NCBI GenBank assembly: GCA_002104905.1
Contig: MCFE01000535.1
Coordinates: 1-61,367, forward strand
Direction of reading: 5' to 3'
Origin: Basidiobolus meristosporus CBS 931.73
Lineage: Eukaryota > Fungi > Basidiobolomycota
DNA: 61,367 bases
Of this stretch, positions 1-55,523 are shown piece by piece; positions within the stretch are counted from its first letter, which is position 1, and each line of letters opens with the position of its first letter. Below the pieces are notes generated by a model, which was given only the letters and a program-made list of their open reading frames with translations, searched no databases and was not told the origin of the DNA. The position numbers were made by a program, and so were the translations under genes.

Positions 1-2338
1 ATCATGAATTTTCCCAATTGAGAAGCTGTTAAATTCTTTGGGTTCTCGGATTTGGATGCTAGACATGCGCAGCACGATTTGATATCCAGAACCTCCGCAG
101 AGCATAATCACATACGATGCATGGTGAATTTCAGAGTTGGCCATTAGTAATTAATATAATGATCCATGAGTTAGGCGAGCGCCTTGAGCTTACGTCTATA
201 AGATGAAATTGCACATCCCGCAATTCTTTTTTGCAGGAATTGTTTCTAACCCTGTACACATTGATCACAATTTGGGCTATTGCAGCTGCCTTATTGACCC
301 TTCGCATTTTACGATCTTTTTAGATGTGTCGAGCATTGTCTGGTACGTTAAATATTCAGAGATTCGTGCGAAGCATGCACCATAGCCTGAGCCACTGTCC
401 CGCAGCAATTCCATATTCGGCAACGAGGCAGTTATCGTGACCAGTTACCATCGTATTGGATGTTCTTCACGGCATTTCATTGGCAAAATATAGCGCGTAC
501 GAATCTGTCCGCGCAAATCCAAACAGTTTCCAGAGAAATCCCAGAGCTGTCCTAAACCTTGCATGAGCCACTCCATCACCAACTTTCAAACTGGGTAAAT
601 ACTGCTCATCTATATTAGTATGTACTAATTAATGATGCCGTTTGACAGTCACGGATCTGAGATTCGCGACCTTTCTAACCAATTGAGTCAAGTCGATGCT
701 TTTACTAAAAGGAGTGTACAAATCAGCAACCAAGCCCTCACTGAGAGCTGAGTCAGATGACGTGTCCCAGTAGACGGCCATTCATTTCTCTTAGACGTCA
801 TCAGTGGCCACATGCTTTAAAGCTAATTTCAATTTCGGTCTAGCAAGTCGGTAGGTGGATTGCCACGCTACCGAACGCTATTCCGCAGGTCATCTTGCCC
901 TTGACTCCCTGATGCTTCCACATTGCATGCCAACCGTGTCCCAAACATGAACATTCTGTAGGAGCATACAGTTGTTGGCAGTAAAGAGCTCAAAACCGAA
1001 CGAAAGATAGCCTTTGCTATGCAAGTAATACCAACTTGATTTGCACTAGAATCTTGGAAGGTTTGGAGACGATCCTAGTGGAGATGTCTCAAACTTGGAT
1101 GAGGAAGTAGACAAAGCGATTTTGTGGAACACAGAATGAGCCCTAAAATCTGCCATTAATCCATATATGCCGCATACAATCAACCAAGGCCCTTTCGAGT
1201 ACAAGTCAATACATTGTTTGGGAAGCTCCATGTCTCGCGTCTTCCTGGTATAAAGAAGTCCTATACTGAAACCTAGACCATGGATCCAGAGAGGCTTGGA
1301 TGGAATTGATCGATACTAGAGTTAGTATTGGATCATGGAATTTGGATCTTGCAGTGTGGATCTTTGAATGACAAGAGTGCTCAATGATACGCCGGCGTTG
1401 TGATATGTAATCGCTTACTATCTCCAAGACCAGGCAGTAACCAGATTTAGTTGGCTGATATCTGGTTCATATGATACTGTTTGTTCACATCCACTTCAAA
1501 TAGTCCCAACAGTCATCAATATTAACATTCTATCTCCAACGTACTGTAGGGAACACCGCTTCATGAGCACCCTCCGTTTAAGCATCCATGGCAAAATACT
1601 ATTTCAAATGGATATGGCCCGAATAATGCACATATTTGAATCGAACACTAATTCAATCCCGCATGCTAATGTAAAATTAATTGAATGATTATAAACTCGC
1701 CTTAATAGGGGTGAAACGTGCGTTCGAAGTGGAATCGTTTCATTGGGGTGACACCAATTTATTTGACTTCTTTTTAATTGAGTTTCTTATCTTCATTTGA
1801 TATATCGGTGAATTTCCGTTTCTAACTTGGCGTTGTGTACCCACAGTCATTTTACACGGGCCTTTTCTACTCCCATGTCAGCGTGATTCTTTCATATTTA
1901 TTCTTAACCCCCGATTATTTCTCGCCCAAAGCACTGCAAGCAGACCTTGTTTTCTTGTCACACTGCACACCTTTTTGGCGGTACAGCTTCCCCTTAATTT
2001 CTGAGCTATTACTTTTTATTATTAGTAGTCTAATCGTGCTGCTTTTCGGTGGACTCGTATTGTCCTTCAAGACCTTATCTCAGCTTTCACTCCTGTAGCA
2101 AATTACCAATAAATCACTTGTCAAGTCATTTCCCACTAATCCGTTAGCAGGTAAAGTGACATTCACTTAGTCAGGCTCCTTTTCAAAACTTTGTTTATTC
2201 TAACCTTCTCTGGAACTTCTGTAGTGTTGCACTTAAAGTAAGATAAGGTTAAGCACGAGAAGAAAAGAGACAAATTCAGTGTCCCCGGCGCAATCAACAA
2301 TCTCTACGACTGCCAATTGGCACATCACATTCGAAACT

Positions 2339-4414
2339 ATGAAAGTGATCAAGTATCACCTTGGAACTTATACTCATCGTAATCAGAAATTGCCCCTATG
2401 TCTCTATCATTTTATATCACAAGATTGCCCTGTCGAGCAGCTATTCACTTTTCACCTGAAGCTTCGTGACTTGGACCAGATCTTTTGCGATACGAACTCA
2501 GGCTACATATACAGTACGAAAGTATTGAATACTTGTACAGATAGCAGTTCTGATTGTGTTCTCACCGAAGACAATGGAGAAATCTATGTTGAAGCGCATC
2601 TGGTGAAGGAAATTGCTCGTCAGGTGGGGGAAAAAGTACTGATAGAGCTGTGCCAACTGGACGAATCGGCTATTCGATCCGACACCATTAGGAACGTGTT
2701 GAATCCTCTTCCCAACGTTGATCTAGAGGACGAACTTGAAATGATGGAAGCTGACCTACACGTGGTAGTTGGCTTGCATAGTGGTCATGGGGAGGTGCAA
2801 GTCAAGACGGAAGAACTCATTGACTCCAGTGGCTTTCACATTCCTCGCCTGTCCAAATCCCCACAACTAGATAAAACAGTTCGTAGAGTAAGGTCCCTTA
2901 ACAGAATGTCAATTGAGGAGGTTCTTGATCGACGTTCTGGGATCTTTGAAAGGCCTGGGTCTGGAAGGGCGCTACCATATACTATGGAAGCCATCTCCGA
3001 AGATTCATCACATCATCTAACGAACCACCGATTCCTTCATGAGTCTGAACCGCCCTCTTCTCACTCGCCTCCATCGAATACTACTACGCCTATTAGAATA
3101 CTGAATGAGGATTCTCTAGAACGCAAACGTAAACGGCCAATAACTCCTTTAAGCGCCAATGCTAAAAATCCACACATGGCTCCAATTACAACAGAGAGCA
3201 ACGGAAGGCCTCACCATGTTGTTGAGGATGTCACGGAGCACATTCGCGCACTCCATAAGCAACAGAAGCAGCAACAACACCTCCCCCAAACGCGCACACC
3301 ACTATTTGATTCTCATGCTGGGCAACATCATATATACCAGACGCAAACGGGCACTAACCATAGTATTTCTTCCAAAATTGCTGGGTTAAATCGTGGCAAA
3401 AACACTCGGAATCTAACCATTAGTACTCCTTCATATGAAGAATCCACCGTTGCACCCAAATCCGCCCCAATCCACCCAACTTATCAGCATTTAGGCGGCT
3501 CTGGCTACCGGGTTTATTCATCCCAAGGAGGTCAGGTGTATTCTACATTGAGCGGGCAGAGATTAATGCCATCGAACTCAACCATCCCTCCAAACACCGC
3601 CATCCCTTACGAAGCTTCTCTGTATAATCGCGGTTCCTCTTCATACCATCCTTCTAATTATATGGGAACCACGCCTACAGTGAAATCAAATGCCCCAGTA
3701 CCCGACCCATCTGTCAACGTTCCTCAGCCATCTGTTCCTCCACGCCCCGTGACTGCTCACCCATATAGCTCTCAAGCTATCCATTATTCAAGCAAGGCTT
3801 ATCCGCAGCGCTCATCACCTCCGAAATTTCTATCGCAACACGCGATACCCAGTAGCAATCCTTTGGGATCCAGGCAGCAATTCATGTCTCTATTTGAGTC
3901 CCTCTTTGATAACATCGACTCAACCAGGGGATTGAAGATTCAACTGGAGGAGCAGATACGAAAATCAACAACGCTATTACAGACACTACAGGCTTCTGGT
4001 CCAATGATCGAGGGGCTGGTTAGAAGCCATTTCAGAGACATGCAAGGGCAATTTATCGAGAAGTACGACACGACCATCGAAGATATAACGCAGCGCCTAG
4101 ATCGACTCGAAGAGCGCCAGCTTCAATTAGACCAACAATACGCTAAGTTCCAGAATCGAAGCGCATCTTCCGAAAGTGGGGAAGAAGCAGAGTCCAGACT
4201 GCTGCAATCCAATGGAGGACGTAAAGACCCATCAGAACTCCCAACACCCCCACTTATACTTAGCCATCCAAGATTAGATAGTGAGGGCCATCTTACTAGG
4301 GTGGTAAAAAGCCAAGGTGTTAGTGCGGACATGAAAACAAGGGATTACGAGGAGATGATCAAATGTCTGGTAGATCGGTTGGAGACTCTTGAGAGAAGAA
4401 TAGATCAGCATTAA
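2339..4414 (+). CDS. Intronless hypothetical protein (692 aa from the first ATG): predicted folded N-terminal ~130 aa, long S/P/H-rich disordered middle, C-terminal coiled coil
   Basis: Open ORF 2279-4414; the first ATG is at 2339 (MKVIKY...). The C-terminal segment QQFMSLFESLFDNIDSTRGLKIQLEEQIRKS...RLDRLEERQ is heptad-like. No family recognised with certainty. Confidence 0.8.
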   Translation: MKVIKYHLGTYTHRNQKLPLCLYHFISQDCPVEQLFTFHLKLRDLDQIFCDTNSGYIYSTKVLNTCTDSSSDCVLTEDNGEIYVEAHLVKEIARQVGEKVLIELCQLDESAIRSDTIRNVLNPLPNVDLEDELEMMEADLHVVVGLHSGHGEVQVKTEELIDSSGFHIPRLSKSPQLDKTVRRVRSLNRMSIEEVLDRRSGIFERPGSGRALPYTMEAISEDSSHHLTNHRFLHESEPPSSHSPPSNTTTPIRILNEDSLERKRKRPITPLSANAKNPHMAPITTESNGRPHHVVEDVTEHIRALHKQQKQQQHLPQTRTPLFDSHAGQHHIYQTQTGTNHSISSKIAGLNRGKNTRNLTISTPSYEESTVAPKSAPIHPTYQHLGGSGYRVYSSQGGQVYSTLSGQRLMPSNSTIPPNTAIPYEASLYNRGSSSYHPSNYMGTTPTVKSNAPVPDPSVNVPQPSVPPRPVTAHPYSSQAIHYSSKAYPQRSSPPKFLSQHAIPSSNPLGSRQQFMSLFESLFDNIDSTRGLKIQLEEQIRKSTTLLQTLQASGPMIEGLVRSHFRDMQGQFIEKYDTTIEDITQRLDRLEERQLQLDQQYAKFQNRSASSESGEEAESRLLQSNGGRKDPSELPTPPLILSHPRLDSEGHLTRVVKSQGVSADMKTRDYEEMIKCLVDRLETLERRIDQH

Positions 4415-28630: not shown

Positions 28631-30008
28631 TTATTGAGTAAGGTAGGGCAATTCGCCGCTACTGCTACCAATACTATAGCTATTACCGCCACTGCTGCTG
28701 CTGCTGTTGCTGTTGAGTTGTAATGATGGCAACTGGAATTTAGCAAGACGACAGATAATGTAAGCTTTATCGTAGCTATCAATCTTCATTACATGGGTTC
28801 CAAAAGCGCCTCCTATCCTCATGTGTACATTGAATAGCTCGTAGCCGCCGTCCTTTCGCCTGATGTGAATGGCCTCGGTAAAATCCTCCGACATAGACGC
28901 CGGACACTTGAGCTGCTCATAGCTTTGCTTCTGGATATCGCCCGTTGATAAAGAGCAACCGAACCCTTCTTTCAATGGTGCAGAGAGGAAGCCACCTTGA
29001 AACTGATTGATTCCATTGACAACATGGTCAATGATCTGCTCACGGAGATTCTTGACCCTCTCGGTGTCAGTAGTATGAACAATGCTGTAAAAGGATTGAT
29101 TGACTAAATCTTGAGATGTGTAACCTAAAAGTTCATGGTACTCCTCGGAGATCATGGCACAGTCCATCTTGAAATCTAACATCATAATAAAGTCACCCTC
29201 TTCAGATGAACGAGTAGTGGAACTGTCAAGAGAGTGCTTATCCTCCATTTGCTTAGCTGGCTCGTAAATGTTGTATTGCTTTGGCACCGACTTGTCAGAG
29301 CTGCTGAGAGTTTGGAATCGGGAATGGTTCGAAACATTCATACCAGGCTTTGGCGAGGAAGCATGGGTCTGGAGGGAGGGTTGGTTTGGAGGCGGTCCGT
29401 ACATGTCACCGCGCTGAGACGAGCCATGTCTATAAATCACCGGTTGCTTGTCGCTTGGAGCCGCAGGATTTGATTGAAACATGCAATTACGGACCTCAGA
29501 CTGAGCGTCAAAAGTGGTCGGAGTGAGGTGGATTATTTGGGAGTACTTGGAGTCATGTAGATACGACTCGGACTTCTTGTCCTTGATCTTGGGTCTGCCA
29601 CGTTTCTTGTGTTGGATGTCTACACAAGTATCCGTTTTACCCATGGCCAAACACCTTTTGCAAGGTCTGGAAACTATCAATTTATCAGTCAAGGGAAAAG
29701 GGGAAGGTGAACCAAGATTTTGCAAACGTACCATCACAAGCAAGGTGCGCCTTCTTGCAGTTTGCGCAGGCGCTGGGGACATGTGTTTTGTTGTTCTTTT
29801 TGGAGCTGCCACCCTTATTGGGTTCGGAAGAACTGCTTTCATCGGAGCTTGATTTTCTCGCCTTCGTACGAATTTTGTTCTCAGGGCAAGAACTACTTTC
29901 ATTCGAGCGCTTCAAAGGGTTTTCTGAAGACCAGGGAGACTCTCTTTGAGGTGGATTCGTTTCGGGTGCTGCATGTGAGCCAAAGAATTTGCCTTGCTCT
30001 CTCTCCAT
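28631..30008 (-). CDS. Zn(II)2Cys6 transcription factor with C-terminal PAS-like region (Rds2/Ert1/AcuK-AcuM-like)
   Basis: SACANCKKAHLACD|VSRPCKRCLAMGKTDTCVDIQHKKRGRP across intron 29674-29731; PAS-like ISEEYHELLGYTSQDLVNQSFYSIVHTTD. Confidence 0.88.
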
Positions 30009-34300: not shown

Positions 34301-35687
34301 ATGGCAAAGAGCCAGGAAACTTCCGACCACAGAACCACAGACGTGCTTCCCGAAGAGGCCGAGGTTAGCTCAACGAAATGGAGCCTGGCTTCCTGGGTTC
34401 CGAAGTTCCCCGCTCTCCCGAAGTATACCGGCTCCTTTTCCGTTGGCTGCGCTGATTTGACCTGGTCTTATTTGAAGGAAAGACAGCCGTTCGAGGAGGC
34501 GGAGGAGACAGCCACCGCTCAGGATAACATTCGACACATGATAACCAGGTTGTACTATCCAGCCGAGGTTACTGCAGCTGAAAGAACCGCTAAGTGGCTA
34601 CCCTCACCCAGCTCAGTTTACGCCCAAGGTTAGTTTTTGTTGGTCGCGCCAATCTTGATTTCCCTCCTTAGTAATGCTATCCCAAACAGGCTACGGGGAT
34701 TTCAAGAAGCTTCCCCGGTGGCTGTCCATCCCAGTGGTGGTTGGGATGCTCTCATTCACTTCCATACATGCCTTTATAGAAGCAAAGCTACCAGCTACAG
34801 GCCCTTTCACCAATCCAGCTAAAAAGCATCAATTTCCCGTTGTTATCTTCTCGCATGGCCTGGGGGGTTGTAGAACCACGTATTCGTCAATCTGTGGAGA
34901 AATCGCTTCCCACGGATTTGTCGTGTGCGCTATTGAGCATCGGGATGGCACGGCAAACGCCTCCGCACTTCCGGATACTGGGAAAGACACAGTCACATAC
35001 CGTTGGCCACCGGTGAATGACACAGATGCCGAATACCAGTTTCGTCGCGGACAGCTGCTCTTTCGAGTCTCCGAGGTTCAGCAAACCATCCAAATGTTAC
35101 AACGGCTGAACAACGGGGAAAACATCGAGGAGGGAAAGGCGCGCACAGAAAGTGAGTCCCAGTTCCAAAACAGACTCGATTTCAGTAATGTCGTCATGGC
35201 GGGCCATAGCTTTGGGGCTGCTACGACAGTGGAGACACTGCGAACAGAAAAATCTTTCTTCAGATGCGGGATTCTCCTTGATCCATGGGTTTTTGCCCTG
35301 GAGCATGAGTCTAGCAATTGGAGAGGTGGGCTTGTGCCTACACTGGACAAGCCGGTGTTAACCATCAACTCCGAAGGGTTTACGAATTGGAAAGAAAGCT
35401 TCGACATATTGCTTCCTTTCCTCAATGCGAACCGAGAGCGTTCACGGTCGCCGTTTCTCACCGTAAAGGAGTCCCGCCATATGAATCAGAGCGACTTTCC
35501 TATCCTCTTTCGGACGGTATATGGGCTTAAAGATAAGTTTAGTGGGAAAATTGATCCTGAAGTCGCGATCAATCTTAACAATCGCGCGATACTTCAGTTC
35601 TTACGGAATACTGTTGTAGAGTTCGGCCAGTTCCTCCCTAATGATGAGCAAATCCTTTCCAAGGAGCCAAGCCTAATTACCCATTAA
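34301..35687 (+). CDS. Platelet-activating factor acetylhydrolase family (PAF-AH_p_II) alpha/beta hydrolase
   Basis: LPKYTGSFSVG, FPVVIFSHGLGG.RTTYSSICGEIASHGFVVCAIEHRDGTA, GHSFGAAT nucleophile elbow, LDPW, HMNQSDF; single intron 34629-34689. Confidence 0.93.
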
Positions 35688-38813: not shown

Positions 38814-39335
38814 TGTCATGATCACATGACAACCATGAACACCCATGCCAAGTTTCAGCTTCCTAGCTCAATTTCTAAGAGATTCCTTTTGGAACCTTCT
38901 ACCACCTTCCAGAAAGCTCCTGACCATTCCAAACCATTGTTACACAACAAAACATTCCATGGAAGCTTCCCATTGTATTTCTCATAGTCCAGTACCACAT
39001 ATGGAAATACCAGGTCACATGACTTAGTCACATGATCAGGTGACCCAATCCATTTCCCCATCCTGTCTCAGTGCCGTGTCATCTATGTTATTATCCCCAG
39101 CACCACTCCTGTGCCTCACCCCACAACCCCATATAATATTAGCCAATATCTCTTGGCATCAGTATAGCCAAAAAGTATATATAGTCCTATCCCCCCTTAA
39201 GTATTCCTCAGTCTGATAAACACAGGTCTTCAATAAACAGCCTTGCCTTGAATCCTGCCTTGCCTTGATGGTCCACACCAAAGTCCTTTCCTGCCATGCC
39301 TAGCTTTTCCTCCTGCCTTGTGTCTATTCATAACA
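38814..39335 (+). repeat. 5' LTR of gypsy copy 1
   Basis: TGTCATGATC...TTCATAACA; 8 mismatches against the 3' LTR by eye; TATATATA at 39176-39183. Confidence 0.97.
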
Positions 39336-39741
39336 GTTTTATTAGACTCTCCTGACTTACCTGTGGTTCCCTGCCTTCTGCCCAAAGTTTGAAGAACACT
39401 TGTAAAAGGAATACTCACCGTAAGTATCACCCACCATCTTTCCCTAGTCTTGCCCTATAAAGGCAAAGATACTTTATCTTTGTAAAACTATTGGTCAAAG
39501 CTGCATTTACTTTATTACCCTGCTGGTGGAGTTTACAGTTGTTACAGTATTGGAAGCTTTAGTACAATACTCTATCAAAGGACATTGAAACCAGTACCTT
39601 CTGAAGCAATGCTAACTTATTTAAGTTGGGGATTATGGCTCAATAGTTGTATTCTTGACATACTAGTGGCTTTACAAACCCACAACCTAGTTTAGTATAT
39701 TCCAGTATTCCTTGCAAGTTCATCCGCCTTCCTCTGCTACC

Positions 39742-40675
39742 ATGGCCAACCTAGAGCTGAACTTTGCCCAGCTCATGGCTGCCTTTACCCAACTGCAGCA
39801 AGACCATGCAGACCTCAGGAACACTCTTGCTCAGTTCCAGAACCAAAGTGTCCAGCAAACTAGTCATGTCCTTGTCTACCAAGAACCCAAGTATACTCCT
39901 GCTACCAAGTTCAATGGCTCTCAGAATGAATTCCGTTGCTTCATCAACATGGTGAGGAACAATCTTGCACTCCAGCCCAACTAGTACCCCACTGACCAGG
40001 CCAAAGTTGGCTTCATCTCCAACCTGCTTACTGGTACAGCTCTCAAGTGGTTCTCCCCCTTAGTGGAGCCCAACTCTCCCCTACTCAGAGACTACCAAGC
40101 CTTTCTCACTGAAATGGAGCTAACATTTGGTAACATTGACCAAGCCAGAACTGCTGCCAACAAGATCAAGACCCCCAAACAAGGGAACAAGCCAGCATCA
40201 GTCTATGCCTTGGAATTCCAACAACTCTCCAGTGACCTCAGCTCCTGGGGTCAAGCAGCCTTGATTAGCCAATTCCAAGATGGCCTCAATGATGAGGTTG
40301 GTGATCTGCTACTCACACTCCCAGATCCAGATACATTGGTTGAAGCTATGCACCAAGCAATCTGGTGTGATAACAGACTATTCCAGAAGAAGCAAAAGAA
40401 CCGTCAAAGACACATTCCTGTTGCAGTCCCAGCCCCTCCTGCTCCCCAAGTCACTCCAGAAGATCCTATGCAGATTGATAGTGCCAAATACAAAAAACTA
40501 TCAAAGAGTGAAAAGTCCAGATGTCAACAAGCCAACCTCTGTCTATACTGTGGCCAACCAGGTTCACTTTGCCAAGTCCTGCCCCTACAAGAAGTCCAGC
40601 TTCAAGCTGATGCGGTCCTCCAGTAACCAACCAGATTCAGATCTGTTGGGAAACTCCAATGTCCAGTTGCACTGA
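39742..40675 (+). pseudogene. gag of gypsy copy 1 (premature TAG at 39982-39984; +1 insertion in the zinc knuckle near 40563)
   Basis: MANLELNF..PATKFNGSQNEFRCF..KVGFISNLLTGTALKW..KQGNKPASVYALEF..PMQID..CLYCGQPG. Copy 2 reads CLYCGQPGHFAKSC without the insertion. Confidence 0.9.
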
Positions 40676-40692
40676 CAGGCTTGCAACTGGAC
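40648..40692 (+). promoter_or_regulatory. -1 programmed ribosomal frameshift signal at the gag-pol junction
   Basis: G GGA AAC slippery heptamer in the gag frame (40648-40654), 6-nt spacer, then a perfect 11-bp stem GTCCAGTTGCA/TGCAACTGGAC with a 10-nt loop. The -1 frame is open into pol. Confidence 0.85.
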
Positions 40693-43600
40693 CCACCCAT
40701 GAAAATTCAGCATATCCAAGAATCTTCCTTTGCCACAAAATCTATCCAGTCCTTGAGAATGCCTGTCAAAATCCAGATCCCTGACTCCAGTCCTGTCCCA
40801 GTCCTAGCCCTGATTGATTCCGGTGCTTCATCCTGTTTCATTGACCAAGCCTTTGTCCAGAAGCACTCTATTCCTGCTACCTTGAAATCCTGGCCAGTCC
40901 AAGTAGAAGTTATTGATGGAAGATCACTCTCCTCTGGTGCCATTACCCATGAAACATGCTTACTCCAGCTGTCCAGTACTACTCACCAAGAAATAATTGC
41001 CTTCAACATCATCACCTCACCACACTATCCTATTGTGCTTGGAAGCTCATGGCTGAGCTACCACAATTCAAGTATTGATTGGAAATCCAAGATGCTGTCA
41101 TTCACCAGATCCCACCAAGTCAACTCCATGAAATCTCCAGACCCTGATTGCCATGAAAAGACTATTGCCAACAGTTCAACAGCCCAAAATACCTTGCCAG
41201 CTGCAGGAGCCCCCTGAGCAACTATACCAGCCAAGTACCAAGAGTTTGCCCATGTCTTTGACAAGAAGAAAGCAGAACTCCTCCCTGACCATTGGCCTTA
41301 TGACTGCCCTATTGACCTTGAAGATGGAAAAGTCCCTCCATTTGGCCCAATATATAACCTCTCCTAGCTGGAGTTGAAAGAACTCCATGGTTATATTCAA
41401 GAAAACCTCCAGAAGGGTTTTATTCAGCACTCCAAATCACCTGCTGGAGCCCCAATCCTCTTGGTCAAGAAGAATGGCACCCTCAGAATGTGTGTGTGGA
41501 CTACCATGCTTTGAATAAGATCACAGTCAAGAACTGCTACCCCCTGCCCCTGATCAACACACTGTTGGATCAGCTATAAAGTCTTCACTAAGATAGACTT
41601 GAGGGGAGCTTACAATCTTGTCAGAATCAAGCCTGGTGATGAATGGAAAACTGCCTTTTGCATAAGATATGGTCACTTTGAGTACAAAGTAATGCCATTT
41701 GGCCTCACCAATGCCCCTGCTGTGTTTCAACACCTCATGAATGACATATTCCGTGAATACCTTGACCAGTTTGTGGTAATCTACCTTGACGATATTCTCA
41801 TATACTCCAAGAGTCAAGATGAACATGATGAACATGTCAAGAAAGTATTGAGAAAACTAGACTCTGCCAGTCTTTATGCCAAGCTAGAGTGTGAATTTGA
41901 CCAGAGACAAGTGGAATTTCTTGGTTACCTCATCAGCCCTGAGGGAACAAGAATGGACCCAAGGAAAGTTGACTCAGTCCAATCCTGGAAAACTCCAAGC
42001 TCAGTCAAGGAAGTACAATCCTTCCTGGGATTTGCCAACTTCAATTGCAGGTTCATAGCCAGTTACTTCAAGATAGTCACCCCTTTGACAAAGCTTACCC
42101 AGAAGAACACACCTTTTGCCTGGAATGAGGAGCAATCCACTTCATTCAACCAACTCAAGAAATCTTTCCTGAAGGCCCCCCTGCTTGCCCACCCTGACCT
42201 TGAGAAGCAATTCATAGTGGAGACTGATGCTTCTGATTTTGCCCTTGGTGCCATACTCTCCCAGTATGATGAAGACAACATGTTGCACCCCATTGCATTC
42301 TACTCTTGGAAGTTTTCCCCTGCAGAGATCAACTATGATATCTATGATAAGGAGTTGCTTGCCATCATTGTAGCCTTTGAGCAATGGAGACACTACCTGG
42401 ACGGTGCAAAACACAAAATCAAAGTCTTCTGTGACCATAAGAACCTTGAGTACTTTGCAACTTCCAAAGTACTAAATTGGAGACAAGCTAGATGGTCACT
42501 CTTCCTGTCCAGCTTTGACTTTACTATCACCTATAGACCTGGTGCAAAGCAAGGAAAGCCTGATGCCCTGTCCAGAAAAAAGGAATGAATATGCCCTGGA
42601 AGAGGGAGATGATGCCTGTTGGCAAATGGAATACCCATTGCTGAGCAAGAAACATTTTGAGATTCTTGCCACCTAGTCCTCAAGTCTTGTCACCCCTTCA
42701 TTCCTAGTAAGGATATCAGAATCCCAAGCCTCCAATACAACTTCCAGCACCATCAAGAAATATCTGGAATCCCCAGTTGGGCCCCCTCTCAAGTTCCCAA
42801 ACACCCAGAACCTGCATTTGGTAAACAACCTCATCTACCACAAGCAGCAGCTTTATGTCCCAGACCTTGTCACCCAGCTAGACATCATTAAGTCTTGGCA
42901 TGATTCAATGGCTGCAGGCCACTTTGGTACCGCCAAAACCTTGAATGCTATCAAAAGAGATTTCTGGTGGCATAGAATGATAACTCTTATCAAAGAATAC
43001 ATTCTGACTTGTGATATTTGCTACCAGGCAAAACCAGCCAGACACCAGCCCTATGGACTTCTTCAGCCCTTGCCTATCTCAGAACACCAATGGAGATCTA
43101 TATCTATGGACTTCATTACTGACCTCCCTGAGTCCTGTGGCTTCAATGCTATACTTGTAGTGGCTGACCAGCTGACCACAATGGCTCACTTTATCCCTTG
43201 CTGTAAGAACACTGATGCAAAAGAAACCGCTGAGTTAGTCCGCAAGAATATTTTCCACCTTCATGGTATCCCCAGTGATATTGTGTCACATAGAGGCCCC
43301 CAGTTTGTGTCCAAGTCTTGGAAACACTTCATCCAATACCTTGGTGTTCAAGTCAAGCTCTCTACTGCCTTCCATTCACAGTCTGATGGCCAGACTGAAA
43401 GAATCAACCAGATTTTAGAGCAATACCTCTGGTGCTATATCAATTACCAGCAAGACAATTGGGTTGATCTACTCCCTGTTGTTGAGTTTGCCTACAACCA
43501 CTCAAGCCATAGTGCGACCGGTTTTACATCATTCTATGCAAACTATGGATTCCACCCTCAGTTTGATATCCAGATTCCAACAAACCCAATGAGCCCACAT

Positions 43601-44188
43601 GCGGCTGAACATGCCCAAGCAATCCAGGACATCAGGAATACCCTCAAGGAAGAGCTATCCTTAACTCAGGAAAGCTACAAGAAATTTGCCAATCTAAAAT
43701 GGCATCCCAGCCCTGATCTTAATGAAGGAGATTCTGTATGGTTGCTCAGAAGAAACATCAGCACTGACCACCCTTGTGACAAATTGGATTTCAAGAAACT
43801 TGGTCCCTTCAAGATCAAGAAGAAGCTTAGCCTTATAGTATATCAGCTACAGTTACCAGCAAGTATGAAAATCCATGATACTCTCCATGTGTCCCTCCTG
43901 GAGCCATATTGCAGGAACACCTTGCCAAACTGGCAAGAAGCAATGCCCCAAGCCATCCAGGTTGACCAATATCAAGAATTTGAAGTTGAACAGATTCTAG
44001 ACTCCAAGTATATCCGGTCAAAGCTGTACTACTTAGTAGACTGGATTGGTTATGGTCCAAGTGACCAATCATGGGAACCAGCTACCCATCTCACTAATTG
44101 TCAAGAACTAGGTACCCAGTTCCACCAGCAAAATCCTGCAAAACCTGCCCCAAAAGGAAACAGAGCTTTGCCTGGAAGAGGAGAATAG
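40681..44188 (+). pseudogene. pol of gypsy copy 1 (PR-RT-RH-IN-chromodomain), disrupted
   Basis: ORF fragments 40681-41217, 41599-42588 and 42818-44188. Relative to copy 2: TCA>TGA near 41218, indels near 41470-41580, and an insertion near 42587. The polypurine tract GGAAGAGGAGAATAG (44174-44188) abuts the 3' LTR. Confidence 0.93.
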
Positions 44189-44710
44189 TGTCATGATCAC
44201 ATGACAACCATGAACACCCATGCCAAGTTTCAGCTTCCTAGCTCAATTTCTAAGAGATTCCTTCTGGAACATTCTACCACCTTCCAGAAAGCTCCTGACC
44301 ATTCCAAACCATTGTTACACAACAAAACATTCCATGGAAGCTTCCCATTGTATTTCTCATAGTCCAGTACCACATATGGAAATACCAGGTCACATGACTT
44401 AGTCACATCATCAGGTGACCCAATCCATTTCCCCATCCTGTCTCAGTGCTGTGTCATCTATGTTATTATCCCTAGCACCACTCCTGTGCCTCACCCCACA
44501 ACCCCATTTAATATTTGCCAATATCTCTTGGCATCAGTATAGCCAAAAAGTATATATAGTCCTATCCCCCCTTGAGTATTCCTCAGTCTGATAAACACAG
44601 GTCTTCAATAAACAGCCTTGCCTTGAATCCTGCCTTGCCTTGATGGTCCACACCAAAGTCCTTTCCTGCCATGCCTAGCTTTTCCTCCTGCCTTGTGTCT
44701 ATTCATAACA
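44189..44710 (+). repeat. 3' LTR of gypsy copy 1
   Basis: 522-bp direct repeat of 38814-39335, preceded by the PPT and followed by TSD CTTTG. Confidence 0.97.
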
Positions 44711-45849
44711 CTTTGACACTTGTCTGGAGCTTTTGACCCTGCTTGTAATGGGCTCTTGTGGAAGATGCTGGTTTTTAGCAATGGCACCTTTGTTCATCTG
44801 CCTTTGATAGTTTCTGCTATTCTTAAGATAATTTCTTAGCATACCAATGTGGGCCCAAAATCCATTTGCCTGGGTGAATCCAGGATAATGCTCATGGAAC
44901 AAGTCTAGTGCATTCTGCTTGGCCTTAAGTTCTTGATGGTCCCATGGTATGCTGGCCTTAAGGTGATGCCATGCTGGACTTCTGACAGCCTATTGAATAT
45001 TAGCCCACACTTCATTATTGCACTCAACAGCTTCATATATTTTCAATGTCTTGTAACTTTTAGGCCTTGGCATAAACACCACAGTGTCTCCCTCCCACAC
45101 TGTGATAGGTCTTTCTGTGGGCTTTATCTTTGGACACTGTTGTGGTGCTTCAAGAACTGTATTGTGTTCCTCTGCTGTAACATCAGGAAATGGCTCAAAT
45201 CATGGCTGTGAAATTGAGCCACTTGAGTTCCTTCCTTGCAGCAAAGTTACCACTTTCTCTACCTGGGATATTGATTGCTCTACATGTATTATTGGCACAT
45301 CCTGTTTCTGGACTATTTCCTGATTTCTCTGGGCCCTTACATCTATCCTATCAGCCACTGCACCTAATTGCTTCATTAATACTTTGGTATGAGCTGGCAC
45401 CATACTTGCTAATATGGGTGGTGGTGATGTTATGGCAGCTACTTGCTGGTCTTCAACTGAGGGTACTGAGTTTGCTACATTCTCATCTGCCTGAGCATAA
45501 CAGTCAGCTTGTGGCTCTGCAGAGGTTCTATATTGCCTACTTGACTGAGAGCCTGAGGAGTCTGCATTGTTACCTTCAGTGGGCACACTGTTAACATGGC
45601 CTTTTTTGGATTTAGCACTGCTTGAAGCACTGAGTGCCAAAGCAAGCTGTTGTCCAACCATTCTTCTGCTGCTGTCAGAGGAGGGGTTTGGTAGGGAACC
45701 AGATAACTTTGCTTTATTTTTTGGTGGAATATATATGAAAGTGAGTCAGACCAATGTGGAAATAGTGTTACATATACGTGTGTATGTGGTGCCACAACTT
45801 TGTTTATAATGCTTAATATGGTGGGTCATCATTGAATCTTACATTCAAG

Positions 45850-46122
45850 TAGGTGCAATATCTCAAATACAAGACTGTCTTAAATTCTCATGAGTATTGA
45901 CCAAAAAGTGATATAATAGCATACATTGTTGAAGGTCAAACTGTTTGCCCCATGGATAAGACTACTTTGATACAACACTGCAAGAGAAGAGAAAAAAGAC
46001 CATGTGGCTATTGTAGCAAGCCTCTCAGCCATGAAGTATGCAGACAGAATAGGAAGTATTACAAGGATCATGGCCAGTGTTTTGCCACCCAAGTCATATT
46101 TGACCATTCATCAGTCACTATT
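45850..46122 (+). pseudogene. Probable 5' fragment of the CACTA transposase, cut at the ATT target site
   Basis: Cys-rich ORF (VCPMDK..HCKRR..PCGYCSKP) ends at the PHIS TIR (46123). The matching ATT at 55521-55523 leads into recognisable Transposase_21 sequence. Confidence 0.45.
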
Positions 46123-46305
46123 AGACTTGTTCTGTTGGATAGTGCTACATAGTGCCAGCCTGTTTATGGTGCTGGATTGATCTGGCACTCTACGGCACTA
46201 TCTGGCACTATAATTTCTACCATGATGCCAGTGGTATGATACAGTTACTAGTAATTTTACTCAATCTTACTTATGTTGCTCAGAATAGTGCTTTCCTTGC
46301 TTTAT

Positions 46306-47190
46306 TTACTCTTCATAATGCTCCAGACACATTTCTCTCAGTGTATGTCTTCTTGTATGCACATACTGTGCATTAATAAGTATCTTAACTATTTTACCTA
46401 TTCTGCTGTTTTCACCTTTATATGACTTTCCTCTGTATTTACCTGCCAATATGCTGAATCTCTTCAGATATCCAAATGTGTGCTCTACCTTTACTCTGAA
46501 ATGATTAAATATCTCATTGTAGAGCTTCTGCTTCCTGCTAAGCACACCATTCCTTGGCTTCCTATAAGCTGTAATACATCCTAATCTCTGACAATCCTCT
46601 CCTGTATAGGCTAAGTCTGCCATACATTTCTCCCCTCTACTGAATTCAGGATGATTCTCTACCCAGAGTGCTTTGTCATGCCTACTTCCAGCAAATGGCC
46701 CACTAAACCAGATGATGTTACCCTCAATGTCAGACAGTGCTTGAAACTTCACACAGTGTGCCTTGTACTTGCCAGAATAAAAGTGCCTCTGCCCTCTAGA
46801 AGGTCTGTTAATCCTCACTGGGAAGGTATCCAAAATACTCCTGATATGGAACCTGTTGCTCAACACTCTGGGATATGGAAGTCTATTGCAGCTTCAGAAC
46901 CTAGTATTCCAAGCTTGCTCTAAGTCATTCATACCCTCTGCAAGGTGGTTCTCCATTGCTGTCAGCTGGGAATGAAAGCTTCTAGGACTTTTGTTGCCAT
47001 GGATGGTGGGATGAAACCTTGTAGGGCAATAGTTCTTGTAATAGCAGAGAAGCTTAACAAGGGATCTCCTTGAGTAGATTGGGGTTGATGGGCCACAGTA
47101 CTTGGAATAGATCTCCTCTAGTGTGTCAAAAGGAAATCCAGTGGTAGTGATGGGATTGATGAGAAAAGACCATTCAGATGAGTAAGTCAT
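46306..47190 (-). pseudogene. DDE_Tnp_4-like transposase of copy A, one nonsense codon (46894-46896)
   Basis: ILDTFPVRINRPS..FYSGKYKAHCVKFQA..SGPFAGSRHD..ADLAYTG..HFRVKVEHTFGYLKRF. The TGA corresponds to AGA in copies C and D. Confidence 0.9.
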
Positions 47191-47509
47191 ATGAAAATTG
47201 ATGGGTGATTGTATGGAGGCGGTTTGAATTGATTTGGCGCAATCTGCATTATTTATCTGATTTTTAACACATTATGGTTAAATCTCCATCAATTGCCATG
47301 TATCCCATCATTATGTTGCAAAAGTCATCCGCAAACAATGCCTTGGTACTTTTATTGATGCGTTAATCACAGGTCTAAAATCAAATAGGAAATCTGCGAT
47401 TGATGTGATCTGATCCGTGTCAACACAATCCAAGATGCATCATGCATAATATATGGAAAATTCAACAATCACTTTAGTTTTCATATATATTTCATATAAG
47501 ACCAGGTTG

Positions 47510-48869
47510 ATGCCAATATACTGCTGTATAAGTATCCAAATCCATTGCTATGGTCCCTATAAAAAGCCTCAACTCATCTTTGGTACAACCCAGACAAAAT
47601 CCATCCCCCAGCTCACAAGCGCGGTCTGGACTGGAGAAGTCTATGTCGGATCTGTTGAAATTCTTGCCAAATGATTTTAGTATGGCCCAAGTGTCTATGA
47701 TGAGCCTTCATACAGATATTTGGGCACTACTGATTAATCTAGCAGAACTAGATACCTCAGAGAGTTGACAAAGATGGAAAAATTTGAGTAGAAAGCTGTG
47801 GCATGAGTTCTACATCAAGATGCCAGCCAATGTATGTAAAAAGATATATAACAAGACAAGTATTGAAATCAAGAATGAGCTGAGAGTGAGGGGATTTGAC
47901 AAAGAAGCCACGCGGGAATAATTTTGCATGCAATTTGCACAGTACGGGCCGGACGCGTCCGTTTGTGCCTCAACTTTGGGAACCAAAGAGATTTTGAATG
48001 AGTTTTTGCCTCAAATGACTAATGTACTACGTGATATATTAGTAGAGCTAAGTGGCTTCCGAGAGCAATATACACAGGACTCATCCAGGCAACAGCTCCA
48101 AAGTATCAGACAGAGGGTAAGTGAATACCTTGAGGAATCAGATGGTGAGCTTCAGGAGGAAGAATACAGACCGCAGGCAACATTGTCCAGATCACACCAG
48201 CACGCCTTGCTGGATTCCCTACCATCTCTTGCAAACACAGCACGCCGGCACACGTCAGTCCAGACCACGCCAACACCCTTTACCAGAACGCACTGCGTTG
48301 AGTCAACGCATGCGCTTCAAAGCAAAACTACAAGAACTTGCCAAAGTGCTCATTTAGACATGAGTCCATTGGAGCGGACCAAGTCACGTCAACATGTGGC
48401 ATCACATTGAACTCAGCCAAGGGCCATCTTAATGTGTCAAGGCGCGCCTGCGCGTGCCGTTTTGCCTGACCATCAGCAAGTTACTTCTGGTGAACTGACT
48501 GATGATGACCAACATGAAGTGCCTCAACCACCGGAGCCCTTGGCAAGTAAAAGAATGCGTCAACGTGTGGCACTACAGGCTGGTTCAGTTGGTTCAGTTG
48601 GAGCAATTCAGCGTGGCCAAGCTGCAGCATTGCACTCATCAACTAGGAGGCAAAATACTGACTACAAATACACAAGTAGCCAAGATGATAGTCAGCCAGG
48701 AAGTAGCATAGGTGTGCAAAGTGAGTCACTACCAAATGCTTCAGTAGTAATCCCTGTGAGAAAAGAACCCAGGAGAAGATTATGCAATTGCTTTGAATCA
48801 CTCACATTTGTATTGATCCTGACAACCCTTTTTTTTTGCAATCCAAATCAAGCCATTGCAAATCAGTGA
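47510..48869 (+). pseudogene. Accessory (second) gene of the PHIS-type element, copy A; spliced, function unknown
   Basis: ORFs 47928-48410 and 48432-48869 with a coiled-coil-like segment (QQLQSIRQRVSEYLEESDGELQEEE). Homologous copies at ~53.5-54.8 kb (+) and ~49.9-51.0 kb (-). Confidence 0.6.
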
Positions 48870-49525
48870 TCATCAAATTTTTGATATAAGTAATATCAAG
48901 GTTGTCTCACATTTGAGACAGAACCCCTATAAATAAACACCCTGCATATATATATGTCATCTGTAATACCAGTGCAGCTATTGGATCTGTTTAGCACCTA
49001 CACAATTGCTTGCGTGCTAGCTATGACACCTTGTCCAATCACTAGGATCAGGGATTTACTTGCTCAATGGGCAAAATGGGATATTTGATGGCAAATCAGG
49101 TAGCTTTTTCAGTAGTCAATGAGCCAATTGAGGGCTGCCCGCTTCAAGATAGTTTTGGACCAATTAACCACTGAGATACCGTCCAATTGGAGTGAGGGTA
49201 ACCAAAATGGTAAGTATCAGTGTAGTTTATAGTGTGATACACATTTATTTCCATTTACATTAAAGAAACATATCCAAATACCGGATATTACCTGCCATTA
49301 TAGCGGTATCCAATTGCGCACATGATGCAAACATTACGAGTTGGCGCAATCATCCGTGCCAACCTCATTGTGTCAGATTGTGCCACAGTGTGCAAGATTG
49401 TCCCGCATAGTGCAAAATTGTCCAAGAACAATCCTGCCTTCTGGTAGCTATGATATTGCGCCCAATTGTTCTTTACGACCGCGGATTGCACCATGCGCCC
49501 TGGCATGGTACATTGGAACAAGTCT

Positions 49526-49905
49526 ATTTCAGAGTGAGGGTAGAGCACACATTTGGATATCTGAAGAGATTCAGCATATTAGCAGGTAAATACAGGGGAA
49601 AGTCATATAAAGGTGAAAACAGCAGAATAGGTAAAATAGTTAAGATACTTATTAATGCACAGTATGTGCATACAAGAAGACATACACTGAGAGAAATGTG
49701 TCTGGAGCATTATGAAGAGTAAATAAAGCAAGGAAAGCACTATTCTGAGCAACATAAGTAAGATTGAGTAAAATTACCAGTAACTGTATCATACCACTGG
49801 CATCATGGTAGAAATTGTAGTGCCAGATAGTGCCATAGAGTGCCAGATTAATCTGGCACCATAAACAGGCTAGTACTATGTGCCACTATCCAACAGAACA
49901 AGTCT
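49526..49905 (+). mobile_element. Fragment B: 3' end of the transposase plus terminal TIR, inverted relative to copy A
   Basis: Begins ATTTCAGAGTGAGG (FRVRVEH...HYEE*) right after copy A's TIR and ends GAACAAGTCT at 49905. Inverted repeat of 46123-~46500. Confidence 0.9.
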
Positions 49906-52281
49906 AATAGCAGTTCAATGCAATTGCATCATCTTCTCCTAGGCTTTTTTCTCACAGGGATTACTACTGGAGTATTTGGTAGTGATTCACTTTGCACACC
50001 TAAGCTACTTTCTTGTTGACTATCCTCATGGCTACTTGTGTCTTTGTAGTCAGTGTTTTGCCTACTAGTTGATGAGTGCAATGCTGCAGCTTGGCTGTAC
50101 TGAATTGCTCAGGATGATACAACTGAGCTGGCCTGCATTGCTACATGCTGACACATTCTTTTACTTGCCCAAGGCTCTGGTGGTGGAGGCACTTCATGTG
50201 GGTTATAATCTGTCAGTTAACCAGAAGAAACTTGCTGATGGTCAGGTTTAATGGCATGCGCAGACGCAATTTGATGTGCTGGCATGGCCCTTGGCTGAGT
50301 TTGATGTGGTGCTGCTTGTTGATGCAACTTGGCCCACGCCAATGAACTTGTGTCTTCTTGAGCAGTTTGGCAGGTTCTGGTGGTTTTGCTCTGAAGTGTG
50401 AGCGCTGACCCAATATGTGTTGAGTCAATGCAGTGCGCTCTTGTGAAGAGTGTTGGTGTAGTTTGGACTGAAGTGTGCTGGCATGCGAAGTTGCAAGGGA
50501 TGGTAAGGAATCCAGCAAGTTGTGCAGGCGCAATCTAGATGATGTTGCTTGTGGTCTGTATTCCTCCTCTTGAAGCTCACCTTCTGATTCCTCAAGGTAT
50601 TCACTTACCCTCTGTCTAATACTTTGCAACTGTTGCCTGGATGAGTCCTGTGTATATTGCTCTTGGAAGCCACTTAGCTATACTAATATATCACGTAATA
50701 CATTAGTTATTTGAGGCAAAAACTCATTCAAAATCTCTTTGGTTCCCAAAGTCAAGGCACAAACAGACACGTCCAGCCTGTACTGTGCAAATTGCATGCA
50801 AAATTGCTCCTGCGCAGCTTCCTCATCAAATCCCCTCACTCTCAGCTCATTCTTGATTTCAATACTGCCTTGTTACATATCTTCTTACATACATCCACTG
50901 ACATCTTGATGTAGAACTCATGCCACAGCTTTCAACTCAGGTTCTTCTATCTCTGTCAACTCCCCAAGGTATCTAGTTTTGCTAGATTAGTGAGTGCTTG
51001 TGAGCTGGGGGATGGGTTTTATCCGGGTTGAACTAAAGATTAGTTGAGACTTGGTATAGGGACCATGGTGAAGGATTTAGATACTTATACAGTGGTGTAT
51101 TGCATCAACCTGATACATGGCAATTCATGGAGATTTAATCATAAACCATGGAATATCAGATAAATAAAGTTGATTGTACCAAATTAACTCAAATCATCTC
51201 AGCCCAATCCTTTCCAATTTTAATATGACTTACTCATCTGAATGGTCTTTTCTCATCAATCCCATCACTACCACTGGATTTCCTTTTTACACACTAGAGG
51301 TGATCTATACCAAGTACTGTGGTTGATCTACCCCAATCTACTCAAGGAGATCCCTTGTTAAGATTCTCTGCTATTACAAGAACTATTGCCCTTCAAGGTT
51401 TCATCCAACCATCCATGTCAACAAAAGTCCTAGAAGCTTTCATTCTCAGCTGACAGCAATGGAGAACCACCTTGCAGAGGGTATGAATGACTTAGAGCAA
51501 GCTTGGAGTCCTAGGTTTAGAAGCTCCAATAGACTTCCATATCCCAGAGTGTTCAGCAACAGGTTCCATATAGGGAGTATTTTGGATACCTTCCCAGTCA
51601 AGATGAACAGGCCTTCTAGAAGACAGAGGCACTTTTATTCTGGCAAGTACAAGGCACACTGGATGAAGTTTCAAGCACTGTCTGACCTTGAGGGTAACAT
51701 CATCTGGTTTAGTGGGCCATTTGCTGGAAGTGGCATGACAAAGCACTCTGGGTAGAGAATCATCCTGAATTCAGTAGAGGGGAGAAATGTATGGCAGACT
51801 TAACTTATATAGGAGAGGATTGTCAGAAATTAGGATGTATTACAGCTTATAGGAAGCCAAGGAATGGTGTGCTTAGCAGGAAGCAGAAGCTCTACAATGA
51901 GATATTTAATCATTTCAGAGTGAGGGTAGAGCATGCATTTGGATATCTGAAGAGATTCAGCATATTGGCAGGTAAAAACAGAGGAAAGTCATATATAGGT
52001 GAAAACAGCAGAATAGGTAAAATAGTTAAGATATTTATTAATGCACAGTATGTTCATACAAGAAGACATCCTCTGAGAGAAATGTGTCTGGAACATTATG
52101 AAGAGTAAATAAGGCAAGGAAAGCACTACTCTGAGCAACATAAGTAAGATTGAGTAAAATTTCCAGTAACTATAACCTACCACTGGCATGATGGTAAAAA
52201 TTATAGTGCCAGATGGTGCCAGACCAATCCAGCACTATAAACAGGCTGGCACTATGTGACACTATCCAATGGAACAAGTCT
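49906..52281 (+). mobile_element. PHIS-type copy C, lacking its accessory-side end; transposase 51225-52108 with a stop and a 1-bp deletion
   Basis: Reverse-orientation homolog of copy A; ORF pieces 51459-51755 and 51791-52108; TIR ends at 52281. Confidence 0.9.
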
Positions 52282-55200
52282 AATGATTAAATATCTCATT
52301 GTAGAGCTTCTGCTTCCTGCTAAGCACACCATGCCTTGGCTTCCTATAAGCTGTAATACATCCTAATCTCTGACAATCCTCTCCTATATAGGCTAAGTCT
52401 GCCATACATTTCTCCCCTCTACTGAATTCAGGATGATTCTCTACCCAGAGTGCTTTGTCATGCCACTTCCAGCAAATGGCCCACTAAACCAGATGATGTT
52501 ACCCTCAATGTCAGACAGTGCTTGAAACTTCACACAGTGTGCCTTGTACTTGCCAGAATAAAAGTGCCTCTGCCCTCTAGAGGGTCTGTTAATCCTCACT
52601 GGGAAGGTATCCAAAATACTCCTGATATGGAACCTGTTGCTGAACACCCTGGGATATGGAAGTCTATTGGAGCTTCTAAACCTAGGACTCCAAGCTTGCT
52701 CTAAGTAATTCATACCCTCTGCAAGGCGGTTCTCCATTGCTGTCAGCTGAGAATGAAAGCTTCTAGAACTTTTGTTGCTATGGATGGTTGGATGAAACCT
52801 TGAAGGGCAATAGTTCTTGTAATAGCAGAGAAGCTTAACAAGGGATCTCCTTGAGTATATTGGGGTTGATGGTCCACAGTACTTGGAATAGATCTCCTAT
52901 AGTGTGCCAAGAGGAAATCCAATGGTAGTGATGGGATTGATGAGAAAAGACCATTCAGATGAATAAGTCATAATAAAATTGATGGATGATTGCATGGAGG
53001 TGGTTTGAATTGGTTCGGCGCAATCTGCGTTATTTATCTAATTTTTAATACATTATGGTTAAATTTCCATCAATTGCCATGTATCCCATCATTATGTTGC
53101 AAAAATCATCTGCAAACAATGCCTTGGTACTTTTATTGATGCTTTAATCATAGGTCTATAATCAAATAGGAATTCTGCAATTGATGTGATCTGATCCGTG
53201 TCAACGCAATCCAAGATTCATCATGCATTATAGATTTGTTCCATTGTGCCATTGATCATAGTGCCAGAGAGTGCTGTATATTTTGCTATTAATTTGATAT
53301 TTTAGGGTCATATGCATGGCAATTTTGATCCCAAATTGGCACTGTATGGCACCATCTGGCACTCTCTGGCATGATCAGGCACCTTCTGGCATGCTATGGC
53401 ACTATTGGGCACTATGATCAGCTGGAATGATGGAACAAGTCTAATATATGGAAAATTCAACAAACACATTAGTTTTCATATATATCCCATATAAGAGCAG
53501 GATGATGCCAATATACTACTGTATAAGTATCCAAATCCATTGCTATGGTCCCCATACCAAGCCTCAACTCATCTTTAGTACAACCCAGACAAAACACATA
53601 CCCCAGCTCACAAGCACAGTCCGGACCGGAAAAGTCCATGTTGGATCTGTTTGAGTTCTTGCCAAATATTTTTAGTATGGCCCAAGTGTCTATGATGAAC
53701 CTTCATACAGATATTTGGGCACTACTGAGTAATCTAGCAGTACTAGATACCTCAGAGAGTTGACAAAGATGGAAGAATTTGAGTAGAAAGCTGTGGCATG
53801 AGTTCTACATCAAGATGCCAGCCAATGTATGTAAATAGATATATAACAAGACAAGTATTGAAATCAAGAATGAGCTGAGAGTGAGGGGATTTGACAAAAG
53901 AAGCTGTGCGGGAACAATTTTGCGTGCAATTTGCACAGTACGGGCCGGACGCGTCTGTTTGAGCCTCAACTTTTGGAACCAAAGAGACTTTGAATGAGTT
54001 TTTGCCTCAAATGACTAATGTACTACGTGATATATTAGTAGAGCTAGGTGGCTTCCAAGAGCAATATACACAGAGCACATCCAGGCAACAGCTCCAAAGT
54101 ATCAGACAGAGGGTAAGTGAATACCTGGAGAAATCAGATGGTGAGCTTCAGGAGGAAGAATTCAGGCCACAAGGAACATCGTCCAGATTGCATCAGCTTG
54201 CCTTGCTGGATTCCGTACCATCTCTTGCAACCACAGCATGCCGGCGCACATCAGTCTAGACCATGCCAACACTCTTTACCAGAACGCCCTGCATCAAGTC
54301 AACGTGCGTGCTTCAGAGCAAACAACAAGAACCTGTCAAACTGCTCATTTAGACACAAATCCATTGGAGCGGACCAAGTTGCATCAACATGTGGCATCAC
54401 ATTGAACTCAGCCAAGGGCCATCTCAACGTGTCAAGGTGTGCCTGCACGTGCCGTTTTGCCTGACCATCAGCAAGTTACTTCTGGTGAACTGACTGATGA
54501 TGACCAACATGAAGTGCCACAACCACCGGAGCCCTTGACATGTAAAAGAATGTGTCAGCGCGTGGCACTACAGGCCAGTTCAGTTGGTTCAGCTGGAGCA
54601 ATTCAGCGCGGCCAAGCTGCAGCATTGCACTCATCAACAAGGAGGCAAAATACTGACTACAAATACACAAGTAGCCAAGATGATAGTCAGCCAGGAAGTA
54701 GTATAGGTATGCAAAGTGAGTCACTATCAAATTCTTCAGTAGTAATCCCTGTGAGAAAAAAACCCAGGAGAAGATGATGCAATTGCTTTGAATTGCTCAC
54801 CTTTGTAAGGATCCTAACAACCCTTTTTTTTTGCGATCCAAATCAAGCCATTGCAAATCAGTGATCATCAAATTTTTGATATAAGTAATATCAAGGTTGT
54901 CTCACATTTGAGACAGAACCCCTATAAATAAACACCCTGCATATATACATGTCATCTGTAATACCAGTGCAGCTATTGGATCTGTTTAGCACCTACATAA
55001 TTGCTTGCATGCTAGCTATGATACCTTGTCCAATCACTAGGATCAGAGATTTACTTGCTCAATGGGCAAAATGTGATATTTGATGGCAAATCAGGTAGCT
55101 TTTTCAGTAGTCAATGAGCCAATTGAGGGCTGCCAGCTTCAGGATACTTTTGGACCAATTAACCACTGAGACACCGTCCAATTGGAGTGAGGGTAACCAA

Positions 55201-55520
55201 AATGGTAAGTATCAGTGTAGTTCATAGTGTGATACGCATTTATTTCCATTTACATTAAAGAAACATATCCAAATACCGGATTTTACCTACTATAATAGCG
55301 GTATCCAATTGCACATGTGATGCAAACATTACAAGTGGGCCTAATCATTTGTGCCAACCTGATTGTGTCAGATTGTGTCATAGTGTGCAAGATCATCCCA
55401 CATGGTGCAAAGTTGTCTAAGAGTGATCCTGCCTACTGGTAGCTACTATATTGCGCCTGATTGTTCTTAAAGACCGTGGATTGCGCCGCATGCTCTGGCA
55501 CAGTACAATGGAACAAGTCT
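52282..55520 (-). mobile_element. PHIS-type copy D: 5' part of the transposase (52971-52282), accessory gene and terminal TIR
   Basis: The transposase stops at ...LYNEIFNH (AATCATT) against copy C's TIR; the element ends GAACAAGTCT at 55520, followed by ATT. Confidence 0.9.
53232..53442. mobile_element. 211-bp MITE sharing the PHIS-type TIRs, inserted in copy D
   Basis: AGATTTGTTCCATTG...TGGAACAAGTCT. It is absent at the equivalent site of copy A (catgcatAATatatgg, ~47445); flanks read TAT/AAT. Confidence 0.88.
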
Positions 55521-55523
55521 ATT

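Follow-up and report, generated by a model that had tools for sequence, protein, structure and literature searches.

Pangu elements are a group of the PHIS (PIF/Harbinger-ISL2EU-Spy) superfamily of DNA transposons, known from basidiomycetes, ascomycetes, animals and algae (Han et al. 2015, PMC4482050). They are about 3.5 kb long (mean 3,487 bp), carry a DDE-only transposase open reading frame (ORF) together with a second ORF without known motif, duplicate a 3-bp 5'-ANT-3' target and end in terminal inverted repeats (TIRs) of 11–40 bp that usually start with AG or GG; their transposases form a clade adjoining bacterial IS5 in the DDE-domain tree (PMC4482050). Here we describe a 9.4-kb block (positions 46120–55523) of the Basidiobolus meristosporus contig MCFE01000535.1, of which the whole 61-kb stretch analysed (positions 1–61367, with 0 ambiguous N bases) is called the window. 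In this block, defective copies of one Pangu-type DNA transposon form a cluster, inserted into each other within a repeat island. Any history of this cluster needs an inversion, because the two halves of one of its copies face opposite ways.

This inversion is a further example of a well-known transposon-associated class. Like those described for Galileo in Drosophila (PMC2775673), the inverted segment is flanked by opposite-orientation copies of one family, with arms long and similar enough to recombine. Unlike the Galileo-type cases, it spans only 3 kb and lies wholly within a transposon nest, and the exchanged target duplications on chimeric elements that provide the classical proof are unreadable here, all duplications being ATT/AAT. 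As in Ac/Ds of maize (PMC8225341) and mPing of rice (PMC7584900), the breakpoints fall exactly at the ends of two elements; the Ac/Ds-type events are matched further in that one target duplication is split between the breakpoints and inverted, and that one element is fractured, comparable to fAc. Unlike the present rearrangement, those of Ac/Ds and mPing were caught arising from known progenitors, and the elements described here belong to a different group from Ac/Ds, with 3-bp instead of 8-bp duplications.

The layout of the block was established by repeat search, self-BLAST of the window, three-way alignment of the copies, direct reading of the junctions and in silico un-inversion. On the plus strand it runs ATT, A(+), B inverted, AAT, C(−), D(+), ATT, where A is a full-length element, C an older copy, and B and D the two parts of a third element, X:

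46120–46122, no strand: outer left ATT target triplet adjoining the left flank (f1), counterpart of 55521–55523; junction reading and in silico test
46118–46502, plus: left arm of the inverted repeat, comprising the A left end, the ATT and 2 flank bases; repeat search and self-BLAST
46123–49525, plus: element A, full-length, 3,403 bp, with ends AGACTTGTTC...GAACAAGTCT and subterminal TGGCAC units at 10-bp spacing
49526–49905, minus: fragment B, X positions 380..1 inverted; its first 3 bases (49526–49528) are ATT, the triplet shared with the A right end
49906–49908, no strand: AAT triplet at the boundary between the X left end and the C interior; junction reading
49909–52281, minus: element C, positions 2373..1, an older copy, with the last ~720 bp missing; self-BLAST and three-way alignment
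52282–55520, plus: fragment D, X from position 378 to the right end; its first 3 bases (52282–52284) are AAT
53232–53442, plus: 211-bp miniature non-autonomous element of the same family, within D, with flanks TAT/AAT
55521–55523, no strand: outer right ATT target triplet adjoining the right flank (f2); junction reading and in silico test

An earlier note, made from the letters alone, had described this block, and its coordinates and description proved exact to the base by repeat search, self-BLAST and junction reading. In the self-BLAST, D (52282–55523) is colinear with A (46500–49528) at 92–95% identity, and C (49909–52284) is an inverted copy of the family at 84–92% identity. The inverted repeat (46118–46502 and 49526–49910) is 385 bp long and 96.4% identical, with 14 mismatches and a perfect tract of up to 181 bp.

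Target triplets throughout the block are ATT/AAT. In the junction sequences that follow, a slash marks the element end. The outer junctions read CACT-ATT/AGACTTGTTC on the left (J1) and GAACAAGTCT/ATT-GCAAAG on the right (J5), and their ATT triplets form the outer pair (ATT/ATT) that flanks element X. At J2, where the right end of A enters X at position 377, the sequence is GAACAAGTCT/ATT-TCAGAG; at J3, where a family left end meets the C interior at C position 2373, it is GAACAAGTCT/AAT-AGCAGTTC; and at J4, where the left end of C enters X at position 381, it is GAACAAGTCT/AAT-GATTAAAT. The corresponding uninterrupted site, CTCTGA-AAT-GATTAAAT, is found in A (46494–46509) and in C. Fragment B terminates in ...CTGA-AAT and fragment D starts with AAT-GATT..., with the same AAT in both and each copy beside a TIR. 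Because B and D share this AAT while A and C are uninterrupted there, a 3-bp target duplication is proven. Since B and D each hold one copy of the triplet beside a terminus, they are the two sides of one integration target, the AAT at X positions 378–380; the chance of such a coincidence of the B and D coordinates is ~1 in 3,400. J2 and J4 share this single target, which shows that the right end of A and the left end of C were joined to X in one integration-type event.

The proposal that a single element was split within its transposase gene to give B and D is thereby borne out, as is the opposite orientation of B (X 380..1 inverted); the split falls at AAT, ~7 codons ahead of the catalytic-E motif VEH. 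Flipping 46503–49525 in silico restores, as had been claimed, the order X-left, A(−), AAT, C(−), AAT, X-right within the outer ATTs, which is a fully regular nest. Three other accounts of the junctions were rejected. B and D are not unrelated fragments, for they have the same break coordinate, overlap by 3 bp and each abut an element end. A did not simply insert between f1 and B after B had been inverted, since the inner break of B would then be random, yet it falls on the J4 triplet. A 2-bp TA duplication with GAC...GTC ends was likewise discarded, the uninterrupted CTGA-AAT-GATT of A fitting only a 3-bp AAT duplication. All seven element ends have the form AGACTTGTTC(Y)...(R)GAACAAGTCT, in which the first 10 bases match perfectly between the two ends of each element and the match is imperfect deeper; the window has 8 occurrences of the 11-mer end motif AGAYTTGTTCY, with 0.24 expected. 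No convincing ORF runs across the joined flanks f1 and f2 of the block.

Repeated self-insertion of the family, also proposed earlier, is supported, with at least three insertions in 9.4 kb: at X position 380, at C position 2373 and, for the miniature element, at ~1324. The miniature element (53232–53442), an addition to the earlier description, contains about eight TGGCAC units in 10-bp phase. Its empty site, CAT-AAT-ATATGG, is present in A at 47448–47450, and its left triplet has mutated (TAT versus AAT).

The coding capacity of the family was read from A, which has two genes:

46306–47190, minus: A transposase gene (DDE_Tnp_4), colinear with the relative P0001, with one in-frame TGA at 46894–46896
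47928–48869, plus: A second ORF, two open pieces in one frame, with a stop at 48408–48410

The ORF at 46306–46866(−) matches PF13359 (DDE_Tnp_4) with an E-value of 5.2e-25 over profile positions 1–153 of 158. Together with the ORF at 46894–47190(−), it is gaplessly colinear, at 58–64% identity, with P0001, a 294-aa relative that carries the same domains, was found by a word-based protein search and lies on a 1.25-kb Logan contig. The second ORF (47928–48869) has no Pfam match and no Atlas match. These features fit the Pangu group of the PIF/Harbinger (PHIS) superfamily. The DDE_Tnp_4/IS5-type transposase, which is about 294 aa long and has no other domain, places the family in the superfamily; the ends begin with AG, in line with Pangu TIRs; A, at 3,403 bp (~3.4 kb), has two ORFs of which the second lacks a motif; and the 3-bp duplication is of the ANT type, as confirmed against empty paralogous sites (X378–380 and the miniature-element site) and by the outer ATT/ATT pair. 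Four of the five defining features were thus tested and agree, the fifth being placement in the DDE-domain tree. Unlike published Pangu elements, the present family is confined, at the sites examined here, to the ATT/AAT subset of ANT, and TGGCAC arrays with 10-bp spacing lie close to each of its ends and also within the miniature element; these subterminal units are presumably protein-binding sites. The element is a new family member within an already described group. An exact 30-mer scan of metagenome contigs for further copies of the family returned none.

The block contains three transposase genes, all broken. That of A carries the single private in-frame TGA, at a codon that reads AGA in X and C and corresponds to Arg in P0001. 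A 1-bp deletion at A position 561 (~46683 in A, ~52464 in D and ~51732 in C) puts the X and C genes alike out of frame, and the X gene is additionally interrupted ~7 codons ahead of the conserved VEH motif. An intact transposase is encoded by none of these copies, so any movement relied on a source elsewhere. The frameshift is common to X and C although these copies are otherwise 5–16% apart; both may descend from a defective lineage that was mobilised, or gene conversion may have acted between these neighbours, which form a 700-bp inverted repeat with a 367-bp spacer (51215–51914 and 52282–52981).

C is the oldest copy: the three-way alignment assigns 201 private substitutions to C, 58 to A and 72 to X, and C has internal deletions of 10, ~210 and ~110 bp. 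It also lacks its window-left end, as the earlier note had said, the final ~720 bp being missing; self-BLAST finds no copy of this end anywhere in the 61-kb window. A and X diverge by ~1% over the transposase coding region (positions 100–700) and by 5–9% elsewhere. Over their last ~230 bp (49290–49525 versus 55285–55520) they are 76–85% identical, against 95–99% in the adjacent inner 400 bp, a terminal divergence that may stem from recombination of the right end or from rapid evolution of the subterminal sequence.

The history that we favour, with a probability of about 0.48, is a composite insertion followed by homologous recombination. A would have inserted into the older copy C, and transposase would then have mobilised the composite C[1–2373]-ATT-A as a unit through the left end of C and the right end of A, much as the mPing 'megatransposon', of the same superfamily, moves via the distal ends of two linked elements (PMC7584900). 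The composite would have landed at the AAT of X in the orientation opposite to X. The 380-bp left ends of X and A, now lying inverted and 3 kb apart, would finally have undergone homologous recombination that flipped 46503–49525, leaving A facing forward and the X left end (B) facing backward. Movement of the composite as a unit would leave the last ~720 bp of C behind without a separate deletion, and their absence from the whole window is as expected on this account. The arms of the inverted repeat, with their length, identity and 181-bp perfect tract, are adequate for ectopic recombination. If the stepwise variant with a separate deletion of the C end, considered below, is counted in, recombination of the two left ends becomes somewhat more probable than an even chance.

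Several observations weigh against this composite history. An inversion made by transposase gives the identical sequence, junction for junction. All triplets are ATT/AAT, so the swapped duplications that usually betray recombination are unreadable. The three-way pattern of single-nucleotide polymorphisms (SNPs) shows no switch point in positions 1–380 or beyond; among A, X and C, private variants are interspersed with shared ones to either side of position 380, and three copies cannot polarise them. In the nested ancestor, A(−) and D(+) would have shared ~3 kb of inverted homology, a far larger target for recombination than the 380-bp arms. At the break of C, moreover, A and X read CAC, which is not ANT, with an ATT 3 bp further on, so that insertion into C requires a C-specific 3-bp difference. 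The 181-bp perfect tract in the arms is not evidence of conversion, since the whole transposase coding region shows just ~1% divergence between A and X. Of the earlier note's explanation by recombination and inversion, the inversion stands, while homologous recombination between the 380-bp arms is not established as its cause, a second route leading to the same sequence. The two routes are not separable here, because every triplet is ATT/AAT and the copies are too few for SNP phasing; about four events are needed in either.

That second route, which we consider possible but would put forward only tentatively, is an inversion made directly by transposase (reversed-ends or alternative transposition), in which a single integration into one copy of the Pangu element uses one end from each of two neighbouring copies. 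Its starting point would be A, a truncated C and X arranged head to tail in the same orientation, with the right end of A facing the left end of C across a spacer. Both facing ends would be cut and inserted together into the AAT at X 378–380, 2.7 kb away, while the other ends stay in the chromosome; C and X[1–380] would thereby be inverted, the spacer discarded, and the 3-bp target left as inverted duplicates at the two breakpoints. Both breakpoints do lie exactly at the termini of two different elements that meet one triplet, inverted (ATT at 49526–28 and AAT at 52282–84), a pattern that is the signature of Ac/Ds inversions, including the loss of the inter-element fragment (PMC8225341). The same feature at J2 and J4 is nevertheless predicted by composite insertion plus recombination and is not exclusive to either. 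Undoing the event in silico restores an intact X and a regular array of A, spacer, C, ATT and X; no crossover in the 380-bp arms is needed or seen; and aberrant transposition via the ends of linked mPing elements is on record in the same superfamily (PMC7584900). Reversed-ends transposition has no report for Pangu elements, however. It requires three tandem copies in direct orientation and an extra event to remove the right end of C, which could have been an earlier similar event with a deletion outcome or a composite transposition of C[1–2373]-X. The matching outer ATT pair would then merely reflect target preference, and the event count is equal to, or one above, that of the recombination route.

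It is also conceivable, though improbable, that the nest was assembled in place: C inserted into X at the AAT, A inserted beside or into C, the right ~720 bp of C were lost separately, by direct-repeat recombination with the A right end or by one-ended abortive excision, and recombination of the 380-bp arms then inverted the segment. The final junctions would be identical, and the sharp A/X divergence in the last ~230 bp could mark a recombinant A right end; a subfamily difference in the non-coding ends explains that divergence equally well. This sequence of steps costs at least five events and demands that an insertion hit a flanking triplet precisely or that a deletion stop precisely at one. 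An assembly artefact, in which the true locus is nested but un-inverted and the assembler switched copies within the 181-bp perfect tract, is very improbable: such a mis-join would mimic a recombinational inversion exactly, and the region is dense with repeats of 84–98% identity, but the absence of any N in a repeat-rich 61 kb suggests a long-read assembly, the arms are just 380 bp long and 3 kb apart and are easily spanned by single reads, and they differ at 14 positions lying on both sides of the perfect tract.

The rearrangement is an old scar and not a switch. The suggestion that the segment may still flip found no support, since the divergence of the arms (14/385) is at least as great as that between A and X in the adjacent unique sequence, and no intact transposase is present. 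A programmed switch would be marked by a dedicated recombinase with specific sites or by evidence of both orientations; no recombinase gene was found in or beside the block, where the only enzymes are the broken transposases and retroelement pol genes. The Pangu-type copies are also old relative to the flanking long terminal repeat (LTR) element, whose two LTRs are 1.7% apart. As with any inverted repeat, an occasional ectopic recombination is possible in principle.

The window as a whole holds few long ORFs, retroelement pol genes and scattered intron-poor genes. Two copies of one Ty3/gypsy chromovirus, 95% identical and 12 kb apart, flank the block in inverted orientation, with an integrase that carries a chromodomain and a Tf2-type SH3 domain:

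38814–44711: left chromovirus, with 527-bp LTRs, 98.3% identical, and an intact 5-bp CTTTG duplication on both sides
56869 to beyond the window end (61367): right chromovirus

A larger inversion between these two copies was considered and rejected, because the intact CTTTG on both sides of the left copy indicates that the chromoviruses have not recombined across the block. Between the left chromovirus and the block, an isolated 13-base match to the family right end (ATGGAACAAGTCT, 44894–44906) is followed by AGT, an ANT triplet, but its surroundings show no further homology; the match may have arisen by chance or be the remnant end of a different or very old family member. Upstream of the repeat island lie host-like genes with long uninterrupted ORFs, encoding a fasciclin-domain protein (24007–24837), a PAS-domain protein (28631–29902) and a hydrolase of the PAF-acetylhydrolase family (34674–35687).

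Taken for what it documents, the locus is a new example of known processes, nesting and one inversion. It also marks a limit on inference: in a family that always duplicates one triplet, inversions made by recombination and those made by transposase are indistinguishable from one sequence. Some novelty attaches to one reading alone, that of reversed-ends transposition by a Pangu element, to which we give appreciably less than an even chance. If it were true, Pangu elements would be more than passive homology, and the locus would be the first evidence of an IS5-like eukaryotic group reshaping chromosomes directly via its transposase, as Ac/Ds does; should the genome hold other inversions bounded by element ends at non-homologous positions, alternative transposition would be extended to Pangu. 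Otherwise the block is ordinary transposon archaeology, and an effect on host genes is not evident. In either case it offers a base-exact example of a DNA transposon family building and then scrambling its own nests, since within 9.4 kb it combines an inversion, a miniature derivative, a 3-bp duplication that is proven and what was probably the move of a composite ('megatransposon').

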